Shown: positions 4,399 through 37,582 of the stretch, piece after piece
Position numbering within the stretch: position 1 is the first letter of the stretch
Layout: every line of letters begins with the position of its first letter
Sequence record: KJ019103.1
Strand: one strand, 5' to 3'
Length of the DNA: 64,000 nt
The notes under the pieces: generated by a model
The model's input: only the letters and a program-made list of their open reading frames with translations
What the model was told of the DNA's origin: nothing
Database searches by the model: none
Made by a program: the position numbers and the translations under genes

Positions 4399-4410
4399 GT
4401 CTGTTATAAT
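4382..4410 (+). promoter_or_regulatory. consensus sigma70 early promoter driving tRNA/ncRNA unit
   Basis: TTGACA-N17-TATAAT. Confidence 0.88.
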
Positions 4411-4490: not shown

Positions 4491-4564
4491 GGGTTAATAG
4501 CTCAGCTGGACAGAGCAATACTCTTCTAAAGTATCGGTCGTTGGTTCGAATCCAACTTAACCCG
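4491..4564 (+). tRNA. tRNA-Arg(UCU)
   Basis: Acceptor GGGTTAA/TTAACCC, anticodon arm ATACT-CTTCTAA-AGTAT, GGTTCGAATCC T-arm; no encoded CCA. Confidence 0.95.
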
Positions 4565-4777: not shown

Positions 4778-4849
4778 TCCACAATAGCTCAGCGGTAGAG
4801 TCGGCGACTGTTAATCGCCTTGTCCCTGGTTCGAATCCAGGTTGTGGAG
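4778..4849 (+). tRNA. tRNA-Asn(GUU)
   Basis: Acceptor TCCACAA/TTGTGGA, anticodon arm GGCGA-CTGTTAA-TCGCC, GGTTCGAATCC. Confidence 0.95.
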
Positions 4850-4867
4850 TTCTTTATTATCTTTGAT

Positions 4868-5584
4868 ATGGATGTATCCAATCCTGATAACTGGTATATT
4901 GGTAGATTTTGTGAATCTAACTTCCTAGATCAAACAGCACTCTCCTCAGTGAGGTCATGGATTGATACTCAATCATGGGTAGATGGAGTTTTAACTTTGG
5001 ACTACTCTAAAGATAAGGATCCATATCAACTGAAAAGAAATCAGGCAACGAGAAATATAATCCCACCCAGACTATTTTGGCCACATGTTGATAAGAACGA
5101 AAAGTTCGCTCGGTTCACCTGTCCCCGATCAAGCACCGATCCAAACTGCACAAAAACATCTAAGGGTGAATACTACAAACCACACTTTGATGATGTAGTT
5201 AATGGGCACTTCTCAACTACGATCTTTATCAGTGATCCTGATGAATATGATGGTGGTGAGTTAGTTCTGTATATTGACGGGAAGGAAGTATTCTTCAAAC
5301 CAAAAGCAGGTGAAGGTGTAACTTATGAGACTGGTATTGGTCATAGAGTCAATACAGTCACAAGGGGTGAGAGATTGGCATTTGTATTCTGGACAGATTG
5401 TCGATGGGATGATATTGATGATTATCGTGATTGGCGTTATTATAACTATATGAAAGACTACCTAATGACAACTCCTTATGTTGATACCTTATATGAGTTT
5501 TGTAACGAACCCCATACTATATTCAAAGGGAAATCATATGATATTATGAGAAAGGTTATGAGGAAAGTTATTCCTAATGGTTGA
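4868..5584 (+). CDS. 2OG-Fe(II) oxygenase (PKHD-hydroxylase-like)
   Basis: YYKPHFD...STTIFISDPDEYDGGEL...HRVNTVTRGER; start moved to ATG4868 because listed start lies in tRNA-Asn. Confidence 0.88.
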   Translation: MDVSNPDNWYIGRFCESNFLDQTALSSVRSWIDTQSWVDGVLTLDYSKDKDPYQLKRNQATRNIIPPRLFWPHVDKNEKFARFTCPRSSTDPNCTKTSKGEYYKPHFDDVVNGHFSTTIFISDPDEYDGGELVLYIDGKEVFFKPKAGEGVTYETGIGHRVNTVTRGERLAFVFWTDCRWDDIDDYRDWRYYNYMKDYLMTTPYVDTLYEFCNEPHTIFKGKSYDIMRKVMRKVIPNG

Positions 5585-6633: not shown

Positions 6634-7935
6634 ATGGCAGCATTAAGTTCCACTTCCCCAGGACAACTAGGTAAGTATGTCATCCCCACAGTCCAGAAAC
6701 TAAATGATGCGATGAAACGCAGAACTAGTCTTGGTAGGGGGAGTGGTAAGTCTTATACCATTAAGAATACCCCTGCGAATGTGGCAGCTATCAAGGAGTT
6801 CTCTCGTATTGGTAGCTCTCCCAAGTCACAGAAAGAAGCACTTGCTATTAGTCTGCAGACCACTGATACTAAAGTTCCTACTATTACTATCGGTAGTATT
6901 GATAAACCTAATATCAAATACAACCTTGGGGATATGTCTGAGGCTGTAGTTGGTGCTGCTATTGCCGCCAGGTTTATCTACAAGAATAGAAGTATTACGG
7001 CTTCAAATGTTTATGGTGTCCTATATGGAATGCCACCATCATCTAACTACCCAGGGAAGAAGGGAAAATATACAGAGAAGACATTCCAGTCAATCAATGA
7101 AAATAAGAAGGTCACAGATCAGGTTAAGGTGTATATCTCCCTAGCTGAGGTTAATATGGCTGCTGTGATGGATAGATCCAATAAGGATCTTATTCTTCCT
7201 TATGTTCGTTCTGCAGTTAGATATGCTAATAGTACCACTGTCAAGAAGTGGTCCAAACTACTTTATGAGAACAATAGATCAGATAAGATTGATGTAATGT
7301 CCGATGGTCTTGGAGGACAAACCACAACTAAAGTGGATGTATATGTAAAAGTTAATGATGAGAAAGTAAATATTAATGTGTCACTGAAGGCTGGTGATGT
7401 CAAACAGTTTGGTCAGGTCTCTGGTATTGAGTTTGAGAAACAAACTAAACTATGGGAAACCTCCTTTGGTTTTGGTAGTGAGATTAAGAGTCTAGAGTCA
7501 AAGTATAACCAGTTGATCTCAGATAAATCAACAGTCCCACAGGCTGTAACTATGGTATATCAGGAGGTGGCTAACCTTTTCAATCAAGGTATTAGGAGGG
7601 GTGACGCTGGTATGATAAGGAAATTTGCCAACTCCATTAAGTATTTCGCTACACTAAATGAAGATAATGTAACCCTACTACAGGTGGGTAATGACGCAGC
7701 AAAGCTCTATTCGTTTGATGATATATACCAAGGAATAGAAAACATGCAACTGAACGCTACCATTACTATGGGTAAGAGTGGTCTCCCAACCTTACTAATA
7801 AACGAGACTGCTAGTGGGCAACCTCTTATTCAGTATCGAGTGAAGCAGGAGTTCAAACCCGATGGGTCTCCATACATCAGAAACTATGTGGAGAAGCAGA
7901 CTGTTCTAGGAAAACTTATTGGTGAAAACCTCTAG
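6634..7935 (+). CDS. putative PD-(D/E)xK nuclease-fold protein
   Basis: GDMSE...KVDVYV...VSLKAG fits the restriction-nuclease E...D...xLK pattern; directly upstream of a Dam-like MTase. Confidence 0.5.
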   Translation: MAALSSTSPGQLGKYVIPTVQKLNDAMKRRTSLGRGSGKSYTIKNTPANVAAIKEFSRIGSSPKSQKEALAISLQTTDTKVPTITIGSIDKPNIKYNLGDMSEAVVGAAIAARFIYKNRSITASNVYGVLYGMPPSSNYPGKKGKYTEKTFQSINENKKVTDQVKVYISLAEVNMAAVMDRSNKDLILPYVRSAVRYANSTTVKKWSKLLYENNRSDKIDVMSDGLGGQTTTKVDVYVKVNDEKVNINVSLKAGDVKQFGQVSGIEFEKQTKLWETSFGFGSEIKSLESKYNQLISDKSTVPQAVTMVYQEVANLFNQGIRRGDAGMIRKFANSIKYFATLNEDNVTLLQVGNDAAKLYSFDDIYQGIENMQLNATITMGKSGLPTLLINETASGQPLIQYRVKQEFKPDGSPYIRNYVEKQTVLGKLIGENL

Positions 7936-7938
7936 GTG

Positions 7939-7947
7939 TGTTATAAT
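7939..7947 (+). promoter_or_regulatory. extended -10 early promoter of MTase
   Basis: TGtTATAAT just upstream of ATG7971. Confidence 0.65.
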
Positions 7948-7970
7948 ACCATTGTAGAGATTTCTATTTT

Positions 7971-8870
7971 ATGAAGGAACGCAGAAAGTATCCAACCGTA
8001 TTGAGGTATCCAGGCGGTAAGTCTAGGATTATCTACTATTTGTTTAGGGAAAATATGATCCCTAAGAATGTCAAGGAATACCGTGAGGGTTTCCTAGGTG
8101 GGGGTTCTTGTGCTCTTGCGTTTTCTGTGATGTATCCAAACACCCCAGTTTGGGTCAATGATCTTTACTACAATCTGTATATCTTCTGGACACAACTCCA
8201 GAAGAATCCAGATCCACTTATCAATCGTCTCCTAGAACTAAAGGACGAAGCCTGTGATGCATCAGGTACAGAAGAACTAGAGAAAAAGCATAGAAAACTC
8301 TACACAGATATGCGTGATCTCATTAACACCTCTAGTGATCACCTTGATATTGCAACCTCCTTCTACATTCTAAACCGATCTAGTTTCGGTGGATTCACTG
8401 AACAAAACAAGAATGCCTTCATCCGAGACTCATACAAGAATACTATTTTCTCTCAGAGTAAAATCCGTAAGTTGGCTAATATCTCTGAGATTATCCAACC
8501 CTGGAGAATTACCAATACACACTACAAGGAACTAATGAGAGCTCCTGGTGATGATGTATTTGTGTTCCTAGACCCTCCATATCTAATCAAGGATATGTTG
8601 TATGGTAAGGACAAGGAGATGCACACTGGGTTCTCTCATGAAGAGTTTGTGAGTGAGTGTAAAGGTTCTACACATGACTGGATGATTACCTACAATGAAC
8701 ATGAATGGTTGAGATCCCAGTTCGCTGACTATCATATGGAGTCTTTCGAGTTCCGTTATAGTCTCGCCCACAGGGAAGAGAATGGCAACAAGAAAGAAGA
8801 ACTCCTCATAATGAACTATGAGATTCCTCGTGATATCCCAAACCCACTAGAGGTAGTTTTGTATGGATGA
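7971..8870 (+). CDS. Dam-like (D12, alpha class) DNA adenine methyltransferase
   Basis: RYPGGKS, EGFLGGGS, FLDPPY. Confidence 0.93.
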   Translation: MKERRKYPTVLRYPGGKSRIIYYLFRENMIPKNVKEYREGFLGGGSCALAFSVMYPNTPVWVNDLYYNLYIFWTQLQKNPDPLINRLLELKDEACDASGTEELEKKHRKLYTDMRDLINTSSDHLDIATSFYILNRSSFGGFTEQNKNAFIRDSYKNTIFSQSKIRKLANISEIIQPWRITNTHYKELMRAPGDDVFVFLDPPYLIKDMLYGKDKEMHTGFSHEEFVSECKGSTHDWMITYNEHEWLRSQFADYHMESFEFRYSLAHREENGNKKEELLIMNYEIPRDIPNPLEVVLYG

Positions 8871-9318
8871 TCTAGAGCTAGAGTATCATCTTTATCTGGA
8901 TGGAAACCCTATTCAGACACTGAAGGATGACGCTAGTACAATGACTTTAGCCAAGAAGAGGGTTATTGGTCCTTACATTCGTAGAGCTGAATCTTTTATT
9001 AAAATATCAGAACCATTTAGGGAACTACTTCGTCTTGATGATGGTAAGGATAAACTTCTAGATGCAATAGGTGTTGTCTGGGCACACTACTTTGAACATA
9101 AGATTAACAAGAAGTATATGGTTATCCCTAAGGATGCATCTCTTGATTTTATGGAATACTTTGGTACTATGGTACAGAAGGATAAGTTTCCAGATGATAA
9201 ATATATTAAGAAAGCTCAGCGTATCATTCTCTCTCACGAAAAGAGTATTGATGCTTTCATTAAGGCTTTTCATAGTATCCGTTTAGCCAACGACAAATAT
9301 CTCTCCCTGAAGAAATGA
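8863..9318 (+). CDS. hypothetical protein
   Basis: ORF track; overlaps both neighbours. Confidence 0.75.
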   Translation: MDDLELEYHLYLDGNPIQTLKDDASTMTLAKKRVIGPYIRRAESFIKISEPFRELLRLDDGKDKLLDAIGVVWAHYFEHKINKKYMVIPKDASLDFMEYFGTMVQKDKFPDDKYIKKAQRIILSHEKSIDAFIKAFHSIRLANDKYLSLKK

Positions 9319-12176
9319 TCACACCGAAGTCCCTACTATCATTCCTATCTGAAGCCGCTGATTCTGAGGCTGCACAACAGGCTAAGGAGATGGGTTTAAC
9401 CTCTGCCGGTTATGGTAACTGGCGAGATAAACAGGGCAATGTTGTTGCCAAAACTGTAGATGGTCAGTTGGTGATGATTGACGCCAAGGCAGATCCTACG
9501 GCTAGACCAGCGGCACCTGAGGAGGAAATGCCACCTGAAGAGGAGGAGGAGCCCCAGTTTGTAGAACCAGATCCAGATATGGTTGAGACAGTAGCTAAGG
9601 GTCTTTCTGGTGGTAGATATAATATTGCATCAGCACAAAGGAAGAAAGCGTTACTGGCTTCTGCTAGACAGATATTAATCAATAAACAGATCCAAGACGC
9701 TCAGATGCAAGCCGATGCTGAAGCTCAGGCAGCGGCACAAAACCCACCAGAACCTACTCCAGAGGAGTTGGCACAACAACAGGCGGATATGGAACTACAG
9801 CAACAGAATGCTGTAATGGATACCGAACTGAAGGCACAGAGTGTTGAGAACGGGAAACTGGACCTTCAGATGAAGAAGGACCAGATGAAGCAACAGAAAG
9901 AGGCAGAGAAAGAAGCCAAGGCTATGGATAAGTTAGCCAAGAAGGCTCAGAGTCAGAAAGATCCTGGATCTATGGCTCAGAGGATGGCTAATGATGCTGA
10001 GTATGAGGCACAAGTTTCGAAGGATGGGGAAGAAGCTCTACTTGATGTTCAGACTGAACCTGATGTGGCTCCAGCGCCTAAACCAAAATCAAAGGCGTTA
10101 GATAAGGCTAACAAGAAAGCCAAAAAGATAGATACCACAGATTCTTCTGATAAAGAACTAAGATCTGCTGCTGATGATGTTATTCGTAGTCTACTCAGTG
10201 GAAACACTAAGAGGGCAGATAAAACATATAAAGAAATTAAGAGAAAGTCATTCAGTCAACTAAGAAATCAGACAGATAAACCACAGAAGAGGGAAGATCC
10301 TAAAGTAACAGAGGAGAGATTTGCCTCTCTAGTTGATAATATCGATCCTAACAATCTAGGACCTGGTATGAGATATGATCCCATCAGAGGAAAGGCTTCC
10401 GCTAAGACGGCGGTTCTAAGTGGATTTGATTCACCAGAAGATTTCCCAGAGTTTCAATCCAAAGAACTAAAAGGTCTCACCTCACTTATCAGAGACTATA
10501 TTGAGAAAGAGAACACTATGTGGTTCAACTCCGAGGTAGATAGGAAGAGTGGTGAAGGTGATTTCTCCCTAGATGGTTCTGAATACTTTAGTGATGAGGA
10601 AGCCAAGTCAGTGAATACAGATCTCAAGAACTCTGCTGATATTTCACAGTTCTTAGATTGGGGTCTAACCTCAACCAAGGCTGGGAAGTTTGGTGCGCAG
10701 AAACTAGCCTATCCACAGGAAAGAATGGCTCTTATTGATAACTATGATAGTGAGGAATCTACATCACCAGAAGAACTTGTGGCTAAATCAACCATCAATA
10801 AGGTTTCAGATAATGAGGTGGATAAATCTTGGAGTACTCTTTCTGGTTCTAAAAAGAAGTGGTTTGAGACTGCTGGTCACGGTAGGGGGGGATCACACCC
10901 ATACTGGAAGGAGAACCCAGAAGAGTGGGGCAAAGCTATGTTGAAGAGGTATCTAGAACAGGGTGGTAGGGATGGATACCTCCACTTTGAGGGAGCCCCA
11001 CCACTACAGTTCAAGGATATGGCAGCTGATCACGTAATCTCCTACGCAGATAACACTGATTATTGGAAGAAGAAAGCACTAGAAGAAGATCCAAACCTAC
11101 AGGGATCTGAACTAGCAGAGAGGGCAAAACGGATCTCTGATGACCCATCTAACATTATCTTCACCCGATGGGGATTCAATCAACAGCAGAAAGATAAGAA
11201 TCCTCTATGGGATGTTAGACAGAGATATGAGAAAGAATCTAAACAGGGTGCCTCGAAGCAAGATAATAAGGCACAGGAAAGTCAGAATAAAAAGAGGAGA
11301 GGTGAACTTCGTAATGAGTTGTATTGGAAACCACTTCAGGAAGCAGTTGGTGAGATAACAAAGAGGGACAAGAGTGGAAACATGAAGTTAACTCGAGAGG
11401 GTTATGATGAACTTCGTAATTATGCGAAAACTGGGTATCAGATGTTAGACAAATCTGGATATGGTAGAGACCTATCCAAATCTGCTGGCTTCTACCAGAG
11501 AAACGCTATGACAGACGCGTATCGTGCTCTAATTGGATCTATCAAACCTGGTATTCAGATCTTTGGTAGAGACAGACTCCGTGGTGGTGACGGACAACAG
11601 GCGAGTGACTGGCAGGGTATTGACGGAAAACACTCCAATACTGCGGCAGATGGAAACATAGATCAGGGATCAATGGTTGATCCAGGCACTGATTATGTGA
11701 AGCACGCTATGGCACAACTACACCTATTCGGTGGTGATAAAGGTAGACTTCTCGCCAAAGAATCTATGGATAGAATCAAGAGAGCGGGTGATGCTCTAGT
11801 TGTTGGTGATATTGGAACTGGAATGTTCACGAAATATATCGCTGATAACCTATCTGCTATGAAGCAACTAGCAGACGAGGGTGGTTTGGAATTGGATTAT
11901 GATGATGAATCTGGAGATCACCAGAGAATCCTTAACGCAAACATCATAAAGAATGTTCTAAAGGAGAAGAACCCTTCTGGTTATCGTTTGGAAGAAGATA
12001 TCTTCAATGAAGATAGACCAGCGATGAGAGGAAACATAGCGAAGAAGAGGAATGATGAAGAGTTCACTAGACTGAATGAGGATCTACGTGCACTTATGAA
12101 TCCTGGTGAATGGGATGAGATCTATAAGGATACTGTTCTTGAACAGTTTGAATATGATGGGGAACTTATGTTATAA
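9315..12176 (+). CDS. large probable virion-internal protein with central HNH-like nuclease motif
   Basis: N-term KSLLSFLSE/A plus a domain shared with ORF 16249; central RYLEQGGRDGY...MAADHVIS...DDPSNIIFTRWGFNQQQKD. Confidence 0.6.
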   Translation: MITPKSLLSFLSEAADSEAAQQAKEMGLTSAGYGNWRDKQGNVVAKTVDGQLVMIDAKADPTARPAAPEEEMPPEEEEEPQFVEPDPDMVETVAKGLSGGRYNIASAQRKKALLASARQILINKQIQDAQMQADAEAQAAAQNPPEPTPEELAQQQADMELQQQNAVMDTELKAQSVENGKLDLQMKKDQMKQQKEAEKEAKAMDKLAKKAQSQKDPGSMAQRMANDAEYEAQVSKDGEEALLDVQTEPDVAPAPKPKSKALDKANKKAKKIDTTDSSDKELRSAADDVIRSLLSGNTKRADKTYKEIKRKSFSQLRNQTDKPQKREDPKVTEERFASLVDNIDPNNLGPGMRYDPIRGKASAKTAVLSGFDSPEDFPEFQSKELKGLTSLIRDYIEKENTMWFNSEVDRKSGEGDFSLDGSEYFSDEEAKSVNTDLKNSADISQFLDWGLTSTKAGKFGAQKLAYPQERMALIDNYDSEESTSPEELVAKSTINKVSDNEVDKSWSTLSGSKKKWFETAGHGRGGSHPYWKENPEEWGKAMLKRYLEQGGRDGYLHFEGAPPLQFKDMAADHVISYADNTDYWKKKALEEDPNLQGSELAERAKRISDDPSNIIFTRWGFNQQQKDKNPLWDVRQRYEKESKQGASKQDNKAQESQNKKRRGELRNELYWKPLQEAVGEITKRDKSGNMKLTREGYDELRNYAKTGYQMLDKSGYGRDLSKSAGFYQRNAMTDAYRALIGSIKPGIQIFGRDRLRGGDGQQASDWQGIDGKHSNTAADGNIDQGSMVDPGTDYVKHAMAQLHLFGGDKGRLLAKESMDRIKRAGDALVVGDIGTGMFTKYIADNLSAMKQLADEGGLELDYDDESGDHQRILNANIIKNVLKEKNPSGYRLEEDIFNEDRPAMRGNIAKKRNDEEFTRLNEDLRALMNPGEWDEIYKDTVLEQFEYDGELML

Positions 12177-12177
12177 T
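12148..12177 (+). promoter_or_regulatory. early promoter of MTase cluster, inside 3' end of upstream gene
   Basis: TTGAAT-N18-TATAAT with TG extension. Confidence 0.7.
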
Positions 12178-12202
12178 ATAGAGAGTCTCTCTGTATTATA
12201 GT

Positions 12203-12976
12203 ATGATTGATCTGATCCACGAAGAGTGTATCGCTGGTATGAATAAACTCCCAGAGGGTAGTGTGGATGTGATTGTTACTTCCCCTCCCTACAATCTGGG
12301 TATCGATTATTCCACATATTCTGATAAGAAGGGTAGGGTAGAGTATTTGTCATGGATGCGGGATGTATTTCTTGCCGCCAGGAGAGTTCTAAAGGATCAG
12401 GGACATCTTTTTCTAAATGTTGGTTATTCTAATATTGATCCTTGGGTTAACATGGATGTTGCACAGACACTCCGTGAAGATTGGGTGTTGCAGAATAATA
12501 TTTGTTGGGTTAAATCTATTCACGTTGGGGATAAAACAACAGGACACTTCAAACCAATCAACTCCAAGAGGTTTATTAACCCAACATGGGAGTCACTATT
12601 TCACTTCACTAAAGACGGGAATGTGGAGATTGATAAACTAGGTGTAGGTGTTCCCTTTGAGGTGAAGTCTAATATCAAGAGGTGTGGTCACGCACAGGAC
12701 CTACGGGACAGGGGAAACAGTTGGTTTGTTCCCTATCCACACATCGCTAGGAAGCACCAGAAAGCAAACCATCCCGCTATCTTTCCTCCTGATCTGGTGA
12801 AGTTTTGTCTAAAGACTTCTGGTATTGATAAAGGTGTTCTGATGGATCCTTTTGTTGGAACTGGAACTTCAGCGTGGGTAGCACAAGAGATGGAATGGGA
12901 CTTTATAGGTTATGATATTGATGAAGAGTATTTGGATTTTGCTAGATCGAGGTTAATGAATGTCACAGCGTTTTGA
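12203..12976 (+). CDS. beta-class N4-C/N6-A DNA methyltransferase
   Basis: VTSPPY near N-term; HPAIFP; DPFVGTGT and GYDID near C-term. Confidence 0.93.
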   Translation: MIDLIHEECIAGMNKLPEGSVDVIVTSPPYNLGIDYSTYSDKKGRVEYLSWMRDVFLAARRVLKDQGHLFLNVGYSNIDPWVNMDVAQTLREDWVLQNNICWVKSIHVGDKTTGHFKPINSKRFINPTWESLFHFTKDGNVEIDKLGVGVPFEVKSNIKRCGHAQDLRDRGNSWFVPYPHIARKHQKANHPAIFPPDLVKFCLKTSGIDKGVLMDPFVGTGTSAWVAQEMEWDFIGYDIDEEYLDFARSRLMNVTAF

Positions 12977-13706
12977 TGTTGTTATTGGCAACCCCCCATA
13001 CCAGGATGGTAGTGGGGATAAAGAGAAGGGGTTATCTGGATCAAAGAAGAACCTATACTCTGCCTTTATCACCAAGAGTATTGAACTACTAAAACCCAAC
13101 GGATATCTATCATATATCTGTCCACCTGGATACATCAAAACAACTTCTATTGAGAAACCCTCACCACTATTCAAACTAATCCAACAGTATAATCTTATCT
13201 CTGTTGACTTCAATTGTAAGAAATACTTTCCAACAGTCTCCCTACCAGTCATCACCCGTTTCCTTCTACAGAACACAAAGGAATATAAGGGAACTGATTT
13301 TGGTAGTGAGGTCATTGATATTTCTCTTATGGATTATATACCTATCCATTGTTCCAAAGATACACTGAAACGGTTAGAAGAGGTAGTATCCAAGAAGAAA
13401 ACCCTAAACTTTAAGAGAGATGATAGTTTTGGGGTAGTGAATAGGTGTATCAAAGACAAAACTAACTTTGTCGTTATAGCACAAGTATCACCATCCAAAC
13501 TAGAAGTTTGTGTGAATGATGTATTGATAAATAAAAAGGGAAACAGGAAACCAGTTCATGTTATGGTATGTGATAATACTAGGCATGCGGAACGTATTGG
13601 TGATATAATGAGAAGCGAGAATGCCACATTTTTAAATACCACCCTACGATATGGTGATGGAAACGTCTATCCTGGAATCATTAACTACCTAAACTATGAA
13701 ATTTGA
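12960..13706 (+). CDS. Eco57I/gamma-class MTase C-terminal half (motif IV plus TRD, no motif I)
   Basis: Starts FDVVIGNPPY; NLYSAFI...LLKPNGYLSYICP; no FxGxG. Confidence 0.8.
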   Translation: MSQRFDVVIGNPPYQDGSGDKEKGLSGSKKNLYSAFITKSIELLKPNGYLSYICPPGYIKTTSIEKPSPLFKLIQQYNLISVDFNCKKYFPTVSLPVITRFLLQNTKEYKGTDFGSEVIDISLMDYIPIHCSKDTLKRLEEVVSKKKTLNFKRDDSFGVVNRCIKDKTNFVVIAQVSPSKLEVCVNDVLINKKGNRKPVHVMVCDNTRHAERIGDIMRSENATFLNTTLRYGDGNVYPGIINYLNYEI

Positions 13707-13737
13707 TGTTGTTATTGGCAACCCTCCATATCAGAAT
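12972..13737 (+). repeat. 36-nt direct repeat pair (12972-13007, 13702-13737)
   Basis: tttgatgttgttattggcaacccYccataYcagRat; 3 mismatches, 730 nt apart. Confidence 0.9.
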
Positions 13738-14601
13738 CCTGATGGTGTAAAGAACAAGAAGATCTGGTTATCTTTCTTTGATCTTGGTGTCTCTCTCCTA
13801 AAGGAGGGTGGCACTATGTGTTATATCACGCCCACCACTCACTTCTGGAGTTTGGGTAGAAAGTGGCAAACTGGTGTGTCTGCTGATATTCTACTGAAAC
13901 AGAACAACCTTCGTAGTGTAGATTTCACAACATCCAAACACTTCCCACAGGTTGGTGACTACATCTGCAACTATGTTCTACGCAAAGAACCTCCCAGTGG
14001 TATGGTAGATGTTATTGAGAAAGATGGGACAGAAGTTCTACGCCCACATAATGATGTCTATGATTGTGATGAGGAGAGACAAAAGGCAAAGTTCTTCTCT
14101 GCTATGAGAGAACTACGAGAGAAGTATGGGAAGTATCATATCCCCCACGACACAAGAGATAAGAGTCATTATAGTCAGACACAGGAGGGTGTGTATCAGC
14201 ATCCTACTTATATTTCGGCAGCAAAACAGATATGGTATGCTGACAGTCCTACACTAGGAACTGATACATTAAAGATTATTATGAATATGTCTTCCTACTT
14301 CTGGAATATCAATGATACTCAGAAGTATATGAGGATTGATTCAGGTCCTGGTGTTGGGTTATTGGGAAGAATGTTGGCAATTGATAGTGTGAAGGATGGT
14401 GAGAAGATAGTTGAGTACCTAACTTCACCACTAGTGAAGTTCTACATTGACTGTATGAAGAGAACATCCCCATGGAATCACGGGGTCTACCAGTTGCCAA
14501 AGTGTCACCATATGACAGAGGATGAGATTCTGGAAGAAATAGGTTATAATAAGGATGAGTTTTATAGCATGTATCCAGAACGTCTGGAAACCAAAGTATA
14601 G
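13696..14601 (+). CDS. second gamma-class MTase C-terminal half
   Basis: Starts MKFDVVIGNPPY; IWLSFF...LLKEGGTMCYITP; no motif I. Confidence 0.8.
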   Translation: MKFDVVIGNPPYQNPDGVKNKKIWLSFFDLGVSLLKEGGTMCYITPTTHFWSLGRKWQTGVSADILLKQNNLRSVDFTTSKHFPQVGDYICNYVLRKEPPSGMVDVIEKDGTEVLRPHNDVYDCDEERQKAKFFSAMRELREKYGKYHIPHDTRDKSHYSQTQEGVYQHPTYISAAKQIWYADSPTLGTDTLKIIMNMSSYFWNINDTQKYMRIDSGPGVGLLGRMLAIDSVKDGEKIVEYLTSPLVKFYIDCMKRTSPWNHGVYQLPKCHHMTEDEILEEIGYNKDEFYSMYPERLETKV

Positions 14602-14630
14602 TTGACAAGGGACCCCAGGTGTGTTATACT
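14602..14630 (+). promoter_or_regulatory. sigma70 early promoter
   Basis: TTGACA-N17-TATACT. Confidence 0.85.
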
Positions 14631-14655
14631 ATCTGGGTAGGTTAGGTTATTCTGT

Positions 14656-15537
14656 ATGGTGAAACCCCTGTTTAAGTGGACTGGTGGAAAGGGGCGACTA
14701 TTCCAGAAGTATCAAGATCTGAACTTCTTCCCAGAGGCAGACAGGTTCGACACATTTGTTGACCTGTTTTTTGGTGCTGGGTCAGTCACCCTTTGGGTTG
14801 CGGAGAAGTATCCAGATAAGAAACTCATTATTAATGATAAGAACACGGAACTTATGGGGTTATATACCCAAATACGTGATAACTGGGGTGAGTTTAGTGA
14901 GCACTATAAGAGAGTGTATAACGTATTCCTAGACACCCCAATAGAGAAAAGAAAGGCACTCTATAACTGTTATAAGAAGAGATATGCATGGAACTATAAG
15001 TGGTTGTCAGAAGCAGAGATTGCGGCAAACCTCTTGGTTATGATGAAGATTAACTTCAATGGTATTTGGTTAGCGTATAAGATGTATGGTCGTAGGTATT
15101 CTACGGCACCAGGGAAGATTGATTATAAAGAAAGTATCTTTGGTATGGAGAATGTGGAACAGTTCCGTCAAGTCCTACTACGGGCAACACTCTACAATAG
15201 ATCCTTTGAGGATGTTCCTATTCCTGATAACTCCTGGGTATTTGCTGATCCACCATACAGAGACACCAGAGATATGTATTCCGATACATTCACCGATGAA
15301 CTTCAGTCTAAACTGGCAAAGTTCATAGTTTCTACAGACGGACTATACTGTGAGTCTAATAAAGAAACTGGTGATGGTTTCTGGGGAGAACACTTCCCTA
15401 TGGAGAACATCCACTTCACAGATCACAAATACACTTGTGGTTATGGGGGATCCATTAACCCAGTCACTGAAGTTCTTATAAAGAACTATGGGAATAATAT
15501 CCCACAACCAACTACCCTTGATTCCTTTTTTAACTGA
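14656..15537 (+). CDS. Dam-like (D12) DNA adenine methyltransferase
   Basis: KWTGGKG, DLFFGAGS, FADPPY. Confidence 0.9.
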   Translation: MVKPLFKWTGGKGRLFQKYQDLNFFPEADRFDTFVDLFFGAGSVTLWVAEKYPDKKLIINDKNTELMGLYTQIRDNWGEFSEHYKRVYNVFLDTPIEKRKALYNCYKKRYAWNYKWLSEAEIAANLLVMMKINFNGIWLAYKMYGRRYSTAPGKIDYKESIFGMENVEQFRQVLLRATLYNRSFEDVPIPDNSWVFADPPYRDTRDMYSDTFTDELQSKLAKFIVSTDGLYCESNKETGDGFWGEHFPMENIHFTDHKYTCGYGGSINPVTEVLIKNYGNNIPQPTTLDSFFN

Positions 15538-15539
15538 TT

Positions 15540-16232
15540 ATGCAAAAGAAAAACCGTATCTCCCACGAAGAAGAAATTAAACTATGTCGTCAGGCACAAC
15601 TACAAGATCATACATCCAAGTATGCTATGACTAAAATGGTTAGTGCTAATATTGGGTTGGTTGAGAAACTCGCTAACAAACTCTACATCAAGAATGATCA
15701 ATACTCTTTCGATGATCTATACCAAGAGGGTGTATTTGGTCTTATCAGAGGAGTGAATAAGTTTGATCCTAGTGTTGGGTGTAGGTTTTCCACATATTCA
15801 TACTACTGGATCTATAGTTATATCATGAGGTATTGTGAGAATAACCTAGGCAAGATCCGTATTCCAACTCACCTCCGTGAGAAGATGAGGAAACAGAAAG
15901 ATAATAAAACAGAGTTGGATAAACTAAAATCAAAGGTTCCTTCAGTAGTATCATTGAATACAATAGTGGGTGAATCACTATCCTTGGATAATGTAGTTAC
16001 ATACACCGAGAATATCTCATTTGATGATGAGATGGAACATGTTTTGGTTGTTATGGGTGAGGTTTTAGATGAAAGAGAACACCAGGTTCTCTGTAGTAGG
16101 TTTGGTATTGGTGGTGAGAAACCACTATCCCAGAGAGAGTGTGCTAAACTACACAATGTTACACATGGTGCTATCTATTTGATTGAGAAGAAATCAATCA
16201 AGAAAATCAAACACTATATGGGGTATAAATAA
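15540..16232 (+). CDS. sigma70-family RNA polymerase sigma factor (divergent)
   Basis: Region 2 DLYQEGVFGLIRGVNKFDP..GCRFSTYSYYWI; region 4 VLCSRFGI...HTH. Confidence 0.88.
   Translation: MQKKNRISHEEEIKLCRQAQLQDHTSKYAMTKMVSANIGLVEKLANKLYIKNDQYSFDDLYQEGVFGLIRGVNKFDPSVGCRFSTYSYYWIYSYIMRYCENNLGKIRIPTHLREKMRKQKDNKTELDKLKSKVPSVVSLNTIVGESLSLDNVVTYTENISFDDEMEHVLVVMGEVLDEREHQVLCSRFGIGGEKPLSQRECAKLHNVTHGAIYLIEKKSIKKIKHYMGYK
16224..16231 (+). promoter_or_regulatory. T4-type late promoter (copies also at 17442, 19392, 45278, 54290, 55055, 56274, 58412)
   Basis: TATAAATA, the gp55 consensus, mostly just upstream of virion-type genes. Confidence 0.85.
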
Positions 16233-16248
16233 TACTATAGTAGATTCT

Positions 16249-17463
16249 ATGGCGATGAGATCGTTTCTAACATTCCTAACCGAAGCCCGTTCTCGTGCAT
16301 CTAAAAGAGCCAAAGAGTTGGGACTCACTGGCAACGGTCACGGTGGATGGGAAGATAACGAAGGTAACCTAGTCGCTATGACTGTGAAGGGTGATCTGGA
16401 GTTTGTGAAGGGAAGAGAACCCAAAGAGGAAGAAGAACCCGATGAAAAGAATTCTGTTCCTGAAGAGGAGCCAACATCCAACAAAGCGCCTGGGGTAGAT
16501 CCAGAGAACACAGATACTCCAAGACAGAAAGAACCAGCGCCTGTTCCCAAAGATAAGGGTATTCTAACTGTTGCTTTCGGTAGGTTTAACCCTCCTACGA
16601 TTGGACATGAGAAACTAATCAATACTGTAGCATCATATTCAGAGAACGGTGATTACATAATCATTCCCTCTAGGAGTGAGGATAAGAAGAAGAACCCTTT
16701 AGATATCGACACTAAAGTTAGTATCATGAGGCAGATGTATCCAACACACGCCGAGAAGATTGTTAACGATCCACATAACAGAACCATCTTTGATGTTATG
16801 CGTAAGGCGCATAATGATGGTTACGCTGGTATTAGGATTGTTGGTGGTGGAGATAGAGTTAAGGAATATGAGAAGTTAGCCAACGCATATAACGGATCTA
16901 CCTATCAGTTTGATGAAATTGATGTAGTAAACGCTGGTGACAGGGATCCAGATGCAGAAGGTGCAGAGGGTATGTCTGCTTCCAAGATGAGAAAAGCAGC
17001 AGCTGATAACGACTTTGCTTCTTTCAGAAAGGGAATGCCAAAGACTCTCAGTAACGATCAGATGGTTTCTATCTACACTCAGGTCCAGAAGTCTATGGGT
17101 GTAACACCTAAGGAAGCTGTAATTGAAAACTGGAAAGTTGCTCCTAGACTGTATCCACAGGAACTGAGAGAGGCTTATATCCAAAACGAAATCTATAATA
17201 TTGGTGATACTGTCAGTCATGACACCACTGGTATGGTAGGTAAGATCGTAAGAAAGGGAACTAACCACTTGATCTGCGTAACAGAAAGTGAAGAGATGTT
17301 CAAGACCTGGACACAGGATGTTAGTCCTGCGGATCTAAAACCACAACCAGCAATCTCTACTCCAAAGGAGAGGGAAGTTGGAACAGATTCCCTTAGATCT
17401 TTCCTTCAAAGGATCACTCCAGGAGAGAAAGAGCAATCCTTTATAAATAAACATAAGAAATAA
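16249..17463 (+). CDS. cytidylyltransferase-like (HIGH-family) nucleotidyltransferase
   Basis: FGRFNPPTIGH, GGGDRV, MSASKMR; start moved to ATG16249 after late promoter. Confidence 0.88.
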   Translation: MAMRSFLTFLTEARSRASKRAKELGLTGNGHGGWEDNEGNLVAMTVKGDLEFVKGREPKEEEEPDEKNSVPEEEPTSNKAPGVDPENTDTPRQKEPAPVPKDKGILTVAFGRFNPPTIGHEKLINTVASYSENGDYIIIPSRSEDKKKNPLDIDTKVSIMRQMYPTHAEKIVNDPHNRTIFDVMRKAHNDGYAGIRIVGGGDRVKEYEKLANAYNGSTYQFDEIDVVNAGDRDPDAEGAEGMSASKMRKAAADNDFASFRKGMPKTLSNDQMVSIYTQVQKSMGVTPKEAVIENWKVAPRLYPQELREAYIQNEIYNIGDTVSHDTTGMVGKIVRKGTNHLICVTESEEMFKTWTQDVSPADLKPQPAISTPKEREVGTDSLRSFLQRITPGEKEQSFINKHKK

Positions 17464-21214: not shown

Positions 21215-22195
21215 ATGGATTTTGTTGATTCCAAGTTCATAAGTCTAGTATCCTCTCGCTTAGAGAAGTTCAAACAGAAGAAGTCTGACCTGTATAACTG
21301 CAGGTGTCCCATTTGTGGAGACTCTTCTAGGAACCGAACTAAAGCGAGGGGATATATTTATGCAGTGAAACAAAATACAAACTACAAATGCCACAACTGT
21401 GGTGTGAGTATGTCATTCTCCAACTTTATAAAGGAGATAGATCCAGTATTACATAAGCAGTATGTTTTTGAGAAGTTCAAGGGGAAGAACTCTACGCCCA
21501 TCAAGAACACTAAGTCAGTTCTGGATAAGTTCTCCTATGAACCTAAGTTCAAGAAGAAGACAAAGATTGATTTGCCCTCCGCCTTTGATGTAAAACTATC
21601 TAAGGAGTATCTGGATAACAGAAAGATTACCTCTGGGGAGTTTTATTACACAGATAACTTCAAAGAGTTTGTGAATGTAATCAAACCAAGGACGTTTGAT
21701 GACGAACGTGGGGGACCTAGAATTGTAATTCCCCTGTATGACAGGGATGGTGTATTGTTTGGGTTACAGGGAAGATCTCTTCTCCCCAGTAAGGTTAAAT
21801 ACATCACAATCATCCTTGATGAAGACCAACCAAAAGTGTATGGTTTGGAGAAGATAGACCCCACACAGAGGGTTTATCTAGTGGAGGGTCCTTTCGATTC
21901 CACATTCATAAATAACTCACTCGCTATGTGTGGTGCTGATGTAGTATTAGATACACTGGGACTACAAGAACTAGTATATGTGTACGATAACGAACCTCGT
22001 AACAGGGAGATCTGCAATAGGATCAATAAAGTTATCGATCAGGGTAAGAAGGTTGTTATTTTCCCCACAAATATAGAACAAAAGGACATCAATGATATGA
22101 TCTTAGCAGGGCATGATATAATGACTGTATTGGGATCCAATGTCTACCAAGGACTAACTGCTAAAATTAAGTATAACGAATGGAAAAGATTATGA
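21215..22195 (+). CDS. 61: DNA primase gp61
   Basis: CPICGDS...CHNC zinc finger; Toprim VEGPFDS, VYDNEPRN, KDINDM. Confidence 0.96.
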   Translation: MDFVDSKFISLVSSRLEKFKQKKSDLYNCRCPICGDSSRNRTKARGYIYAVKQNTNYKCHNCGVSMSFSNFIKEIDPVLHKQYVFEKFKGKNSTPIKNTKSVLDKFSYEPKFKKKTKIDLPSAFDVKLSKEYLDNRKITSGEFYYTDNFKEFVNVIKPRTFDDERGGPRIVIPLYDRDGVLFGLQGRSLLPSKVKYITIILDEDQPKVYGLEKIDPTQRVYLVEGPFDSTFINNSLAMCGADVVLDTLGLQELVYVYDNEPRNREICNRINKVIDQGKKVVIFPTNIEQKDINDMILAGHDIMTVLGSNVYQGLTAKIKYNEWKRL

Positions 22196-36392: not shown

Positions 36393-37582
36393 CAAAGATT
36401 ACAAATGGATATACGTGGCCTCTTATGAAGGACACTGTGACCAAGAGAGATAGGTTGAGGATGGCAAAGTTTATCCTCACCAGTGATAGACTAACACAAG
36501 GTAAAGAAGTTCGTAAGTTTGAGGAGCAGTGGAGTGAGTGGCTTGGAGTTAAACATTCTCTTTTTGTTAGCAGTGGCAGTACCGCTAACCTACTTCTTGT
36601 GTCTGCTTGGAAGGAATTATACGAGATCCCAGACCAGTCGAAAGTAATTGTACCTGCTTGTACTTGGGTAACTAATGTTGCTCCTATCATTCAGTGTGGT
36701 TTGACTCCAATCTTTTGTGACATCAACTTAGAAGACTACTCCTTTGATCTGGATAAACTACAGGATATTCGTGATGAATATCACGATGACATCAGAGGTA
36801 TCTTTGTTACTCACCTCCTAGGATTTCCTGCTAATGTGGAAAAGTTTCGTGATGTTTTCCCCGACGCTCATATTCTAGAAGATGTATGTGAGAGTCACGG
36901 AGCAGTCCTCCCTAGTGGTGATAAGGCGGGAACCTTTGATGTTGGTGGCACATTTAGTTTCTACTTTGGGCACCACATGACTACCATTGAAGGTGGTATG
37001 GTGAGTACTAATGATCCAGAACTCTATGATCTAATGAGAATGAAGCGTTCTCATGGGTTAGCGAGAGAATCACTATACTTTGAAACATACAAAGAGAAGT
37101 ATCCTGATGTAAATCCACAGTTTCTCTTCGTTACTGAGGGATATAACTTCCGTAATACTGATCTAGCTGCTGTATTAGGACAGTCTCAACTGAAGAGACT
37201 AGACAGTATGATTGGGATTCGTAACAGGAACTATGAGTTATACCAACAATTACTAAAGAAACACGAACATGACCTTACACATGAGTATGGTGGTTCTTTC
37301 TATATCCCCTCCACACAGGGGGATGTAAGTAGTTTCTGTTTTCCATTTGTAGTTGATAATATGCACTGCTATCTTAAGTTAAAAGAACTTCTAGAAGAAT
37401 ACTATGTTGAGTATCGACCTATTGTGAGTGGTAACCTCCTACGACAACCATTCTTGAGAGAATATTCTGCTGAGTGTCCCAAGGCAGATATAGCCCATGA
37501 AAAGGGACTATATATTGGGAATAATCACTTTGTAGATGAGTCTAACTTTCACATGCTAGATGAGATTTTGAGCCAACTTTGA
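36389..37582 (+). CDS. PLP-dependent sugar 3-dehydratase, ColD-like (DegT superfamily)
   Basis: SSGSTANLL, EDVCESHG, GTFSFYFGHHMTTIEGG with His at the usual Schiff-base Lys position. Confidence 0.85.
   Translation: MTKITNGYTWPLMKDTVTKRDRLRMAKFILTSDRLTQGKEVRKFEEQWSEWLGVKHSLFVSSGSTANLLLVSAWKELYEIPDQSKVIVPACTWVTNVAPIIQCGLTPIFCDINLEDYSFDLDKLQDIRDEYHDDIRGIFVTHLLGFPANVEKFRDVFPDAHILEDVCESHGAVLPSGDKAGTFDVGGTFSFYFGHHMTTIEGGMVSTNDPELYDLMRMKRSHGLARESLYFETYKEKYPDVNPQFLFVTEGYNFRNTDLAAVLGQSQLKRLDSMIGIRNRNYELYQQLLKKHEHDLTHEYGGSFYIPSTQGDVSSFCFPFVVDNMHCYLKLKELLEEYYVEYRPIVSGNLLRQPFLREYSAECPKADIAHEKGLYIGNNHFVDESNFHMLDEILSQL

Follow-up and report, generated by a model that had tools for sequence, protein, structure and literature searches.

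Does a marine phage that methylates its own DNA also carry in its virion a nuclease directed at DNA that lacks the marks? A stretch of 64,000 nucleotides from Synechococcus phage ACG-2014f isolate Syn7803US44 (KJ019103.1), a T4-like cyanomyovirus of the genus Atlauavirus, raises this question. Within the replication module covered by this stretch (hereafter the window) lies an open reading frame, ORF 9315 (ORFs are named here by their first position in the window), which encodes a 953-residue protein with an HNH-like motif and is followed by a row of DNA methyltransferase (MTase) genes. A first-pass annotation, made from the nucleotide sequence, had proposed an offensive restriction-modification (R-M) system, in which early MTases protect phage DNA and nucleases that are packaged or made late attack unmethylated host or co-infecting phage DNA. 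The observation behind this proposal is partly confirmed here and its interpretation partly supported: a packaged nuclease linked to MTases is supported, and offensive R-M and late expression are unproven. The account that we favour as a whole is a packaged HNH nuclease that lies with linked MTases in an exchanged accessory cassette, to which we give a probability of roughly 0.42. Comparisons between isolates cover the window and 44 further records of the same phage group that match the region, 45 isolates in all. The features discussed are collected in Table 1.

An HNH-like motif is conserved between divergent alleles of ORF 9315

The GenBank product name of ORF 9315 is 'cytitidyltransferase', a misspelling for which a literature search gave no match, and searches of Pfam, PHROG, NCBIfam and PADLOC returned no family for the protein. 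Alignment of its alleles from different isolates shows that there are few invariant positions, and that these form the pattern R-G … G-(G)-x-D … P … D/E-H … N … N-x-x-K at about residues 538-630. The histidine and both asparagines, together with G, G, D and P columns, are invariant, and the residue before the histidine is aspartate or glutamate, in five alleles that are 21-33% identical to that of the window; across five to six alleles the motif is constant where the proteins are otherwise 20-40% identical. When a profile of the motif region was compared with sequences in the PDB, 36 of the 38 matches at E values up to 10 were Cas9 HNH domains, the best being the isolated HNH domain of SpCas9 (6o56_A, E 0.015), with the alignment falling on the catalytic D-H, N and N. 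An AlphaFold 2 model of residues 331-953 is mostly helical, with a mean confidence (pLDDT) of 70 overall and of 80-94 around the motif. Here short strands bear the D-H and the first N, a helix follows, and an insertion, about 40 residues long in the allele of the window (allele A), separates the two strands. The HNH-like motif that the first-pass annotation had noticed is located at about residues 538-630, is held constant by divergent alleles and aligns with Cas9, and on the strength of this motif ORF 9315 is likely to be an HNH nuclease.

The family is very small. A search of 1.84 billion representative sequences with the window sequence as query found 11 clusters, scans of IMG/VR added nothing new, and a word-indexed protein search returned only two to three proteins, low-complexity words saturating its candidates.

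The N-terminus of ORF 9315 resembles a capsid-targeting signal

Residues 5-58 of ORF 9315 are 48% identical to the N-terminus of the cytidylyltransferase-like protein encoded nearby, which accounts for the GenBank product name. This N-terminal module is the normal N-terminus of the cytidylyltransferase in many T4-like cyanophages, and no third protein of the window carries it. In a long metagenomic cyanomyovirus contig (L008) the cytidylyltransferase gene itself occupies the position equivalent to ORF 9315, overlapping the stop codon of a gene of about 147 codons, and its N-terminus is closer to that of ORF 9315 than is that of the window's own cytidylyltransferase. These two facts indicate that the original 5' end of the cytidylyltransferase gene was retained in ORF 9315 on entry of the cassette.

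At the head of the module stands a leader, M-(K)-x-F-x-x-F-L-(S/T)-E-A. The L-x-E-A element lies at residues 11-14 of ORF 9315 and at residues 9-12 of the window cytidylyltransferase, and is also present in the cytidylyltransferases of L008 and two similar contigs (L009 and L011) and in gp14 and gp154 of cyanophage S-CREM2; S-CREM2 gp6 and gp13 keep the F-L-x-E part. The prohead protease of T4, gp21, cleaves after L/I-x-E (PMC9026906); the first such site observed was a Glu-Ala bond, and a leader of ten residues suffices for packaging (PMC9026906; PMC3012670). The short leader of ORF 9315, ending in L-x-E-A, fits this rule, and the likeness to a T4 capsid-targeting sequence drawn by the first-pass annotation holds. 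Elsewhere in the window, the gp61 primase (21410-21445) begins F-x-x-F-I-x-E, like the start of a packaging leader, probably by chance.

Proteins with this leader have been found in virions of S-CREM2. Mass spectrometry of virions purified on caesium chloride detected ORF12 (28 peptides), ORF14, ORF6, ORF13 and ORF154, of which ORF154 was named cytidylyltransferase, ORF12 'CRISPR-Cas9 nuclease' (869 aa), ORF14 kinase and ORF6 SAM (S-adenosylmethionine) hydrolase (PMC10665884). ORF6 belongs to the Pfam S-AdoMet lyase family. ORF12 carries both the HNH motif and the N-terminal module and is homologous to two of the other ACG-2014f allele types described below, D and E (27-28% identity over about 715 residues, E 1e-60); with allele A it shares the N-terminal module and, weakly, the HNH motif, and nothing else. 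ORF14 bears the module twice, and ORF6, ORF13 and ORF154 bear the leader. By analogy with this related phage, which is not ACG-2014f, the virion data are good indirect support for capsid targeting of ORF 9315. The neighbouring S-CREM2 genes for the SAM lyase, the large HNH protein, gp13 and the kinase (OR473000.1 3837-13331; L019) all start with the F-L-x-E leader, and this run looks like a cluster of cargo genes whose products are all reported in virions.

The variable part of ORF 9315 is exchanged together with MTase genes

Comparison of the 45 isolates shows that ORF 9315 is identical to the window in five, is about 45% identical over 69% of its length in 19, and shares only its first 180 residues with the window in the other 21. 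The allele types differ both in the large gene and in what separates it from Dam2, a complete alpha-class MTase gene in the right-hand flank that is kept downstream of every allele type examined. Allele A (953 aa; five isolates) is followed by a beta-class MTase gene and by two genes for C-terminal halves of gamma-type MTases, of 248 and 301 residues; allele B (892 aa; 19 isolates) by the 301-residue half; and allele C (796 aa; two isolates) by a 247-residue and the 301-residue half. Alleles D, E and F account for the remaining 19 isolates. There is no gene between allele D (980 aa) and Dam2, a gene of 169 codons follows allele E (961 aa), and allele F is as E but split into ORFs of 418 and 582 residues, again followed by the 169-codon gene. 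The split allele was seen in isolate Syn7803US7 (KJ019123.1 129958-132938; L006:9001-11981), where the two ORFs overlap and either a frameshifted copy or a sequencing error is at hand. A relationship of the 169-codon gene to the 'EcoRI-like' gp11 of S-CREM2 was considered and rejected, there being no similarity.

To the left, homology between the window and alleles B and C stops near codon 213 of ORF 9315 (Table 1). To the right, blastn homology to the window resumes at 12966 for allele C, at 13696 for allele B and at 14619-14656 for alleles D and E. The start of each gamma half contains the sequence F-D-V-V-I-G-N-P-P-Y-Q, encoded by a directly repeated box of 57 nucleotides, and the right-hand junctions of C and B lie at or just before the two copies of this box. 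The flanks are 92-98% identical overall; identity to the window is about 92% for isolates with D, E or F and about 97% for those with B or C. We conclude that the 3' two-thirds of ORF 9315 and the beta and gamma MTase genes form an exchanged cassette with at least five allele types among 45 isolates.

One isolate, Syn7803US17, carries an additional gene for a free-standing HNH endonuclease of 167 residues (KJ019086.1 138892-139395; L012:3120-3623). It lies between the 301-residue half and Dam2, in the promoter-bearing gap that corresponds to 14602-14630, and looks like a classic homing-endonuclease insertion.

Gene order is similar in metagenomic relatives outside ACG-2014f. P0002 (on contig L020), 59-60% identical to the window allele, is an HNH gene followed by a beta MTase gene and a gamma C-half; P0125 (L015; 35%) has the same order with an N-terminal gamma half in addition; P0124 (L013; 34%) lies between an N-half and a C-half; and P0126 (L017; B-like, 26%) is followed by a C-half. 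A gene of the PF01555 family follows the A-clade HNH gene in both L015 and L020. Adjacency and co-inheritance with beta or gamma MTases, as is usual for R-M genes, were accordingly found for the window, for alleles B and C, and for L013, L015, L017 and L020. Since this order is kept in four distant relatives, it argues for a functional tie between nuclease and MTases that goes beyond the effect of a shared hotspot. The co-variation of nuclease and MTase alleles that was suggested as a check thus comes out in part: gene order is kept, and the correspondence is not one-to-one, as set out in the Discussion.

The gamma MTase may be divided between distant genes

Five MTase genes or half-genes of alpha, beta and gamma type had been counted in the region, and Pfam searches bear the count out, with two alpha genes, one beta gene and two gamma pieces between 7971 and 15537. 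The Pfam gathering cut-offs are 22 bits for PF02086 and 26.7 bits for PF01555 (scores in Table 1). Dam1 and Dam2 both carry FxGxG and DPPY motifs in alpha order, and because both score below the cut-off of TIGR00571 they are better called Dam-like than equivalogs; PADLOC lists Dam1 as a type II or orphan MTase. The beta enzyme has SPPY at residues 27-30 and FxGxG near its C-terminus, that is, motif IV before motif I.

The label 'half-genes' also proved right, as both gamma ORFs match the second half of the Pfam model only. NPPY (motif IV) stands at about residue 10 in each; the 248-residue half opens at this motif, continues with motifs V-VIII and a target-recognition region of its own, and lacks the S-adenosylmethionine (AdoMet)-binding motif I. 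Neither ORF brings motifs X and I-III, NPPY and a recognition domain together on one polypeptide, as a gamma-class enzyme does. Lengthening by an upstream start or by read-through from the preceding gene was rejected, since neither ORF has an in-frame upstream extension. The two halves are 37% identical over their first 92 or so residues only, and their C-terminal recognition regions are unrelated. Both weakly match type IIG and PglX profiles and PHROGs of DarB-like or giant MTases.

Candidates for the missing part were found elsewhere. The N-terminal ORFs of L013 and L015, of 147 and 121 residues, match positions ~20-88 of the N6_Mtase model, which hold motifs X and I, and a 134-residue protein encoded outside the window, about 100 kb from the C-halves, is 54-59% identical to them. 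All 26 ACG-2014f records with an A, B or C allele, which also have a C-half, contain this N-half, and the 19 with D, E or F lack it. N-half and C-half also occur together in S-CAM7, Bellamy and the MA01 group, all of which are without the HNH gene. An origin of the split by insertion of ORF 9315 was rejected, as the gene is also split in these phages. On these sequence matches, the 134-residue half and the NPPY halves may together form a split gamma enzyme, and the unrelated C-terminal regions of the 248- and 301-residue halves suggest that one AdoMet-binding subunit could serve two specificities. Stand-alone N-halves are also found in other cyanophages and in T4-like phages of Aeromonas and Klebsiella.

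Two other proteins were considered as the AdoMet half and set aside. The C-terminus of ORF 9315 contains a conserved run, G-x-I-G-(T/S)-G-x-F, that resembles motif I at about residues 829-836, where the AlphaFold 2 model has helices, and the existence of genuine separate N-halves speaks against it too; the 151-residue protein encoded just upstream of ORF 9315 is a core protein without an MTase motif.

Promoter-like and late motifs

Each MTase unit had been thought to have a sigma70 promoter of its own. The site in the last codons of ORF 9315, ahead of the beta MTase gene, matches at 10 of 12 positions with the TG extension, whereas before Dam1 there is only the extended -10 element TGTTATAAT with a poor -35. 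This latter site lies in a repeat (D3) that it shares with 14617-14640. The promoter assigned to the third unit, ahead of Dam2, is upheld with 11 of 12 positions and an extended TG; it is the best sigma70-like promoter of the region and also marks the right-hand junction of alleles D and E.

Generic sigma70-like matches are not enriched in the window (33 found, 30.4 expected). The extended -10 element TGTTATAMT is enriched: its 10 copies, every one of them on the + strand, compare with an expectation of 2.1, and two of them share a longer box, AGGTGTGTTATA. Three of the ten stand directly before Dam1, the beta MTase gene and Dam2. As the seven other copies lie elsewhere, the element represents a general type of phage promoter and is not specific to MTases; it is probably the early or host-sigma promoter class of the phage. 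The copy at 4402 precedes two tRNA genes, Arg-TCT (4491-4564) and Asn-GTT (4778-4849), the second of which is overlapped by the mechanically called ORF 4820-5584; the annotated coding sequence there starts at 4868.

Eight copies of the T4-type late motif TATAAATA were counted, each on the + strand. Its position directly before the cytidylyltransferase-like and 'gp186' genes suggests that these products are late and possibly virion proteins, and in both the window and S-CREM2 it stands about 20 nucleotides upstream of the module-bearing cytidylyltransferase genes.

ORF 6634 is a core gene, and the MTase region is an insert

A second nuclease had been proposed, ORF 6634, read as PD-(D/E)xK-like and paired with Dam1. 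Neither part of this proposal was borne out. The 433-residue protein has more than 435 homologues of constant length (about 433 aa) in marine metagenomes, is 98.6-100% identical across the 45 isolates and has a relative in a Desulfovibrio phage (28% identity). It has no match in Pfam, NCBIfam, PADLOC or the sequences of the PDB. Its AlphaFold 2 model, built with 35 homologues, is confident (pLDDT 88.7), and comparison of this model with PDB folds gave no match (best E 0.1, TM-score about 0.1); in BFVD, a collection of viral models, uncharacterised cyanophage proteins were the only matches. In L008, L009 and L011 the same gene adjoins the same core genes and has no MTase neighbour. The reading as a nuclease was rejected on these grounds, and the absence of nuclease features together with an MTase-free neighbourhood in relatives is a result that the first-pass annotation had itself named as speaking against its proposal. 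The pairing of nuclease and MTase said to be seen twice is thus seen once, for ORF 9315 with the beta and gamma MTases, because nuclease features are absent from ORF 6634. This ORF is an unremarkable core gene for a widespread phage protein of the replication module, and with this finding half of the original claim falls away.

The three contigs also show how the region was assembled. The gene row of the window runs gp43, UvsX, gp41, MazG, two tRNAs, two 2-oxoglutarate-Fe(II) oxygenases and the region of interest, and continues with a sigma factor, the cytidylyltransferase-like gene, 'gp186', gp61 and NrdA/B. On the contigs the order is MazG, small genes, the 433-codon gene, the gene of about 147 codons, the cytidylyltransferase gene and a gp186-like gene, followed further on by gp61 and NrdA/B; L009 has a 325-codon DUF6267 gene in place of that of about 147 codons. 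The syntenic region of L008, L009 and L011 holds no MTase gene, no large HNH gene and no sigma factor gene, and Dam1 is absent between the 433-codon and ~147-codon genes of L008 and L011. The 151-codon gene of the window is the orthologue of the 146-codon gene of L008 (34% identity, E 2e-27). From this gene order, Dam1 is an insert between two core genes, and 9315-16232, with the sigma factor gene, is an insert between the 151-codon gene and the cytidylyltransferase gene. The stretch 7971-16232 is accessory DNA placed in a conserved cyanomyovirus gene row (MazG, 105-aa, 433-aa, ~150-aa, cytidylyltransferase, gp186-like), in which ORF 6634 and the 151-codon gene are core genes outside the nuclease and MTase system.

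Across the window the tetranucleotide GGCC is strongly avoided (13 observed, 68 expected; observed/expected 0.19). GCGC (0.37) and GTAC (0.48) are avoided as well, and GATC is only mildly reduced (0.76). This composition fits a picture in which the sites of some host restriction enzymes are avoided and those of others are covered by methylation.

Table 1. Location of genes, motifs and junctions in and around the ORF 9315 cassette. Coordinates are those of the window unless another sequence is named.
Feature	Coordinates	Strand	Remarks
ORF 9315, 953-aa protein	9315..12176	+	N-terminal module, charged low-complexity region, variable ~620-aa body with HNH motif
N-terminal module, aa 1-55	9315..9479	+	leader ending L-x-E-A (aa 11-14), then small domain
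Hypervariable part of ORF 9315	9960..12176	+	left recombination breakpoint about 9950-9959 (codon ~213)
HNH (beta-beta-alpha-metal) motif region, aa 538-630	10926..11204	+	R-G…GG-x-D…D-H…N…N-x-x-K
Beta-class N6/N4 DNA MTase, complete	12203..12976	+	PF01555 E 5.7e-44, 151.1 bits
Gamma-type MTase C-half 1, 248 aa	12960..13706	+	PF07669 positions 73-171 only
57-nt NPPY box	12972..13028	+	direct repeat at 13702-13758
Gamma-type MTase C-half 2, 301 aa	13696..14601	+	profile positions 73-171; phrog_3689 positions 66-347 of 348
Dam2, complete alpha-class (D12) MTase	14656..15537	+	PF02086 E 2.2e-20, 73.9 bits
Dam1, complete alpha-class (D12) N6-adenine DNA MTase	7971..8870	+	PF02086 E 1e-24, 88.1 bits
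134-aa AdoMet-binding N-half	36433-36837 of KJ019103.1 (L018:3934-4338)		outside the window
433-aa conserved cyanomyovirus protein (ORF 6634)	6634..7935	+	no nuclease features
151-aa core gene	8863..9318	+	overlaps Dam1 stop and ORF 9315 start; phrog_3417
Sigma-70-family sigma factor gene	15540..16232	+	PF04542 and PF04545 (regions 2 and 4); within the inserted block
Cytidylyltransferase/NMNAT-like gene	16249..17463	+	second copy of the module; TATAAATA at 16224-16231
Extended -10 TGTTATAAT	7939..7947	+	in 35-nt gap before Dam1; poor -35
Promoter-like site TTGAAT, 18 nt, TATAAT, with TG	12148..12177	+	10/12
Promoter TTGACA, 17 nt, TATACT, extended TG	14602..14630	+	11/12
TGTTATAMT copies	4402, 7939, 12169, 14622, 21177, 34002, 34437, 44429, 47766, 57808	+	
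T4-type late motif TATAAATA	16224, 17442, 19392, 45278, 54290, 55055, 56274, 58412	+	eight copies

Discussion

Several of our results weigh against a packaged nuclease that works with the linked MTases. The HNH assignment is statistically marginal: Pfam gave no match at E 0.01 for any allele of ORF 9315, the HNH_4 family came up for allele C only (E 0.079, 13.4 bits against a cut-off of 22), and a Foldseek search of the whole 623-residue model against the PDB found nothing, the model being of moderate confidence. As to packaging, the authors of the S-CREM2 study point out that abundant proteins may co-purify with virions (PMC10665884), and in the metagenomic relatives P0124-P0126 the leader is missing and the N-terminus is another one, so that packaging does not extend to the family as a whole. 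The division into early MTases and a late nuclease was not borne out either. No TATAAATA precedes ORF 9315, the nearest approach being ATAAATA at 9197, and the start of the gene overlaps the stop of the 151-codon gene, which in turn overlaps Dam1 behind the promoter-like site at 7939. ORF 9315 thus does not have the signature of a gene expressed late with the head genes and, from this arrangement, looks co-transcribed with Dam1 from an early-type promoter. With regard to the MTases, the A and B nucleases are about 40% identical, yet their 301-residue halves are 95.7% identical, and alleles D and E have no extra MTase at all; both facts weaken the logic of an offensive R-M system. The co-occurrence of N-half and C-half may reflect a single event in one lineage, since in their flanks the D, E and F isolates stand further from the window (about 92% identity) than those with B or C (about 97%). 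Adjacent genes that are swapped as a block are, besides, physically linked whether or not they cooperate.

These last points lead to the alternative that the genes of the region share an accessory hotspot and nothing more, the MTases acting in anti-restriction and the packaged HNH protein as a host-takeover or anti-defence effector that is indifferent to methylation and might, for instance, break down the DNA of the host. A promoter-like site of its own before each MTase unit would suit such independence, as would the retention of Dam1 and Dam2 in all isolates whatever their nuclease allele, the loose match between nuclease alleles and MTases just described, and the arrival of other mobile genes in the region, such as the small HNH gene of Syn7803US17. 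The SAM lyase and kinase found with the same leader in S-CREM2 virions suggest a general cargo system, and the strong avoidance of GGCC and GCGC shows that host restriction is a real pressure. Set against this is the order of HNH gene, (beta gene) and gamma C-half, which is kept in four metagenomic relatives that come from different samples and share 26-60% identity with the window allele; moreover, A-clade genes always precede a beta MTase gene and B-clade genes a gamma half alone. We regard independent functions as possible but rather doubtful.

Two further alternatives dispense with a benefit to the phage or with catalysis. T4-like phages are known for free-standing homing endonucleases, and ORF 9315 could be a selfish cassette of the homing type that owes its diversity to gene conversion during co-infection (marker exclusion). 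The right-hand junctions of B and C fall exactly at the conserved, repeated NPPY-coding box, the gene in L013 sits between a gamma N-half and C-half as if inserted there, and a genuine small HNH homing gene is found nearby in one isolate. However, the presence/absence polymorphism and small size of free-standing homing endonucleases are not seen: all 45 isolates carry an allele and none has an empty site, and the products, at 796-980 residues, are three to five times larger. ORF 9315 also carries a module common to virion proteins, its catalytic residues are conserved over a very old divergence, and the gamma gene is split in the MA01 group, S-CAM7 and Bellamy, where there is no ORF 9315, all of which makes homing highly improbable. 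A non-catalytic role, as a protein of the head (internal or structural) or as an ejected DNA-binding protein, with HNH-like residues that are structural or a remnant of DNA binding, would fit the lack of a significant Pfam or fold match, the mostly helical body with its long charged low-complexity stretches, and the insertion that parts the HNH strands in allele A. It is nevertheless improbable, as the catalytic D-H, N and N of the Cas9 HNH domain are matched in the alignment by just those residues that stay constant among alleles of 20-40% identity, a constancy of the kind that purifying selection typically produces at an active site.

Among known systems, the nearest in kind are the internal proteins of T4 and their capsid-targeting sequence, the 'Cas9-like' virion protein of S-CREM2, and the virion restriction enzymes of chloroviruses. 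The internal proteins of T4 are ejected with the DNA to counter host defences, and their bodies are highly variable between close relatives (PMC3012670; PMC9026906). ORF 9315 resembles IPI, IPII, IPIII and Alt in its short leader, which ends in L/I-x-E followed by alanine, and in the unrelated, variable bodies behind it. It differs in that neither its leader nor its body is homologous in sequence to those of T4 and, in contrast to the small basic cargo of T4, in being a predicted enzyme of about 950 residues, known here from its sequence, with an extra domain of about 40 residues after the leader. ORF12 of S-CREM2, recorded as 'CRISPR-associated endonuclease Cas9/Csn1 (virion protein)', shares the HNH motif and the N-terminal module but has different neighbours, namely a putative small restriction endonuclease gene, denV and a Dam gene in place of beta and gamma MTases; it is not a Cas9, which it resembles in the HNH motif alone.

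Chloroviruses, which methylate their own DNA and whose particles carry a restriction endonuclease for the degradation of unmethylated host DNA, follow the logic of the first-pass proposal, although the chlorovirus enzymes are classical, small type II enzymes from a virus of eukaryotic algae. Phages and conjugative elements have polyvalent or ejected multidomain proteins, of which DarB of P1 is one; these are large, are delivered with the DNA and combine nuclease, MTase or other conflict domains. In ACG-2014f, by contrast, the nuclease is encoded apart from the MTases, and ORF 9315 showed no second enzymatic domain. Type IIG/IIL and type III R-M systems, in which an MTase provides target recognition for the nuclease, have in common with ACG-2014f the tight linkage between a nuclease gene and MTase genes bearing recognition regions. 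In contrast to those systems, the predicted nuclease here is of the HNH and not the PD-(D/E)xK kind and is a separate protein without a PADLOC match, there is no helicase or translocase, and the MTase appears to be split into two genes about 100 kb apart.

Taken together, we favour a packaged HNH nuclease that travels with its MTases, which could work as follows. The N-terminus of ORF 9315 would come from the cytidylyltransferase gene that once occupied this place, and the L-x-E-A leader and the domain of about 40 residues behind it most likely act as a capsid-targeting signal. The protein would be loaded into the prohead, trimmed by a gp21-type protease and ejected with the DNA. A charged low-complexity linker joins this module to the mostly helical body of about 620 residues with its predicted Cas9-type HNH active site, and the part from codon ~213 to the end is passed between close phages as a cassette with the MTase genes that follow, including those of a putative split gamma enzyme whose distant 134-residue AdoMet half would be used by two NPPY halves with different recognition regions. 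Once in the cell with the phage DNA, ORF 9315 may act as a nuclease. The linked MTases would mark the phage DNA and so shield it from this nuclease or from host enzymes, and unmarked DNA of the host or of rival phages would be cut.

A wider proposal can be framed for T4-like cyanophages in general, in which an N-terminal address, consisting of a leader of about 11 residues that ends in L-x-E and often a domain of about 40 residues, loads interchangeable enzymes into the virion (HNH nuclease, NMNAT-like nucleotidyltransferase, kinase and SAM lyase), and in which the rapidly exchanged nuclease alleles of the ACG-2014f population, co-inherited with protective MTases that include the split gamma enzyme (several swappable specificity subunits to one AdoMet-binding subunit), make up a virion-delivered R-M system against host or rival DNA. 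We consider this proposal, taken as a whole, unlikely.

The present analysis corrects two annotations, 'cytitidyltransferase' in ACG-2014f and 'CRISPR-Cas9 nuclease' in S-CREM2. Modular methylation specificity could be tested on the split gamma MTase, in which one shared AdoMet half is encoded about 100 kb from several recognition halves. With no fewer than five types of body among 45 isolates and flanks that are 92-98% identical, the region stands out as a fast-evolving conflict locus in a wild phage population. If ORF 9315 is packaged and active, marine T4-like cyanophages would have an analogue of the T4 internal proteins that consists of an address tag and an enzymatic cargo, and this would explain why 'metabolic' enzymes such as the cytidylyltransferase recur in cyanophage virion proteomes.

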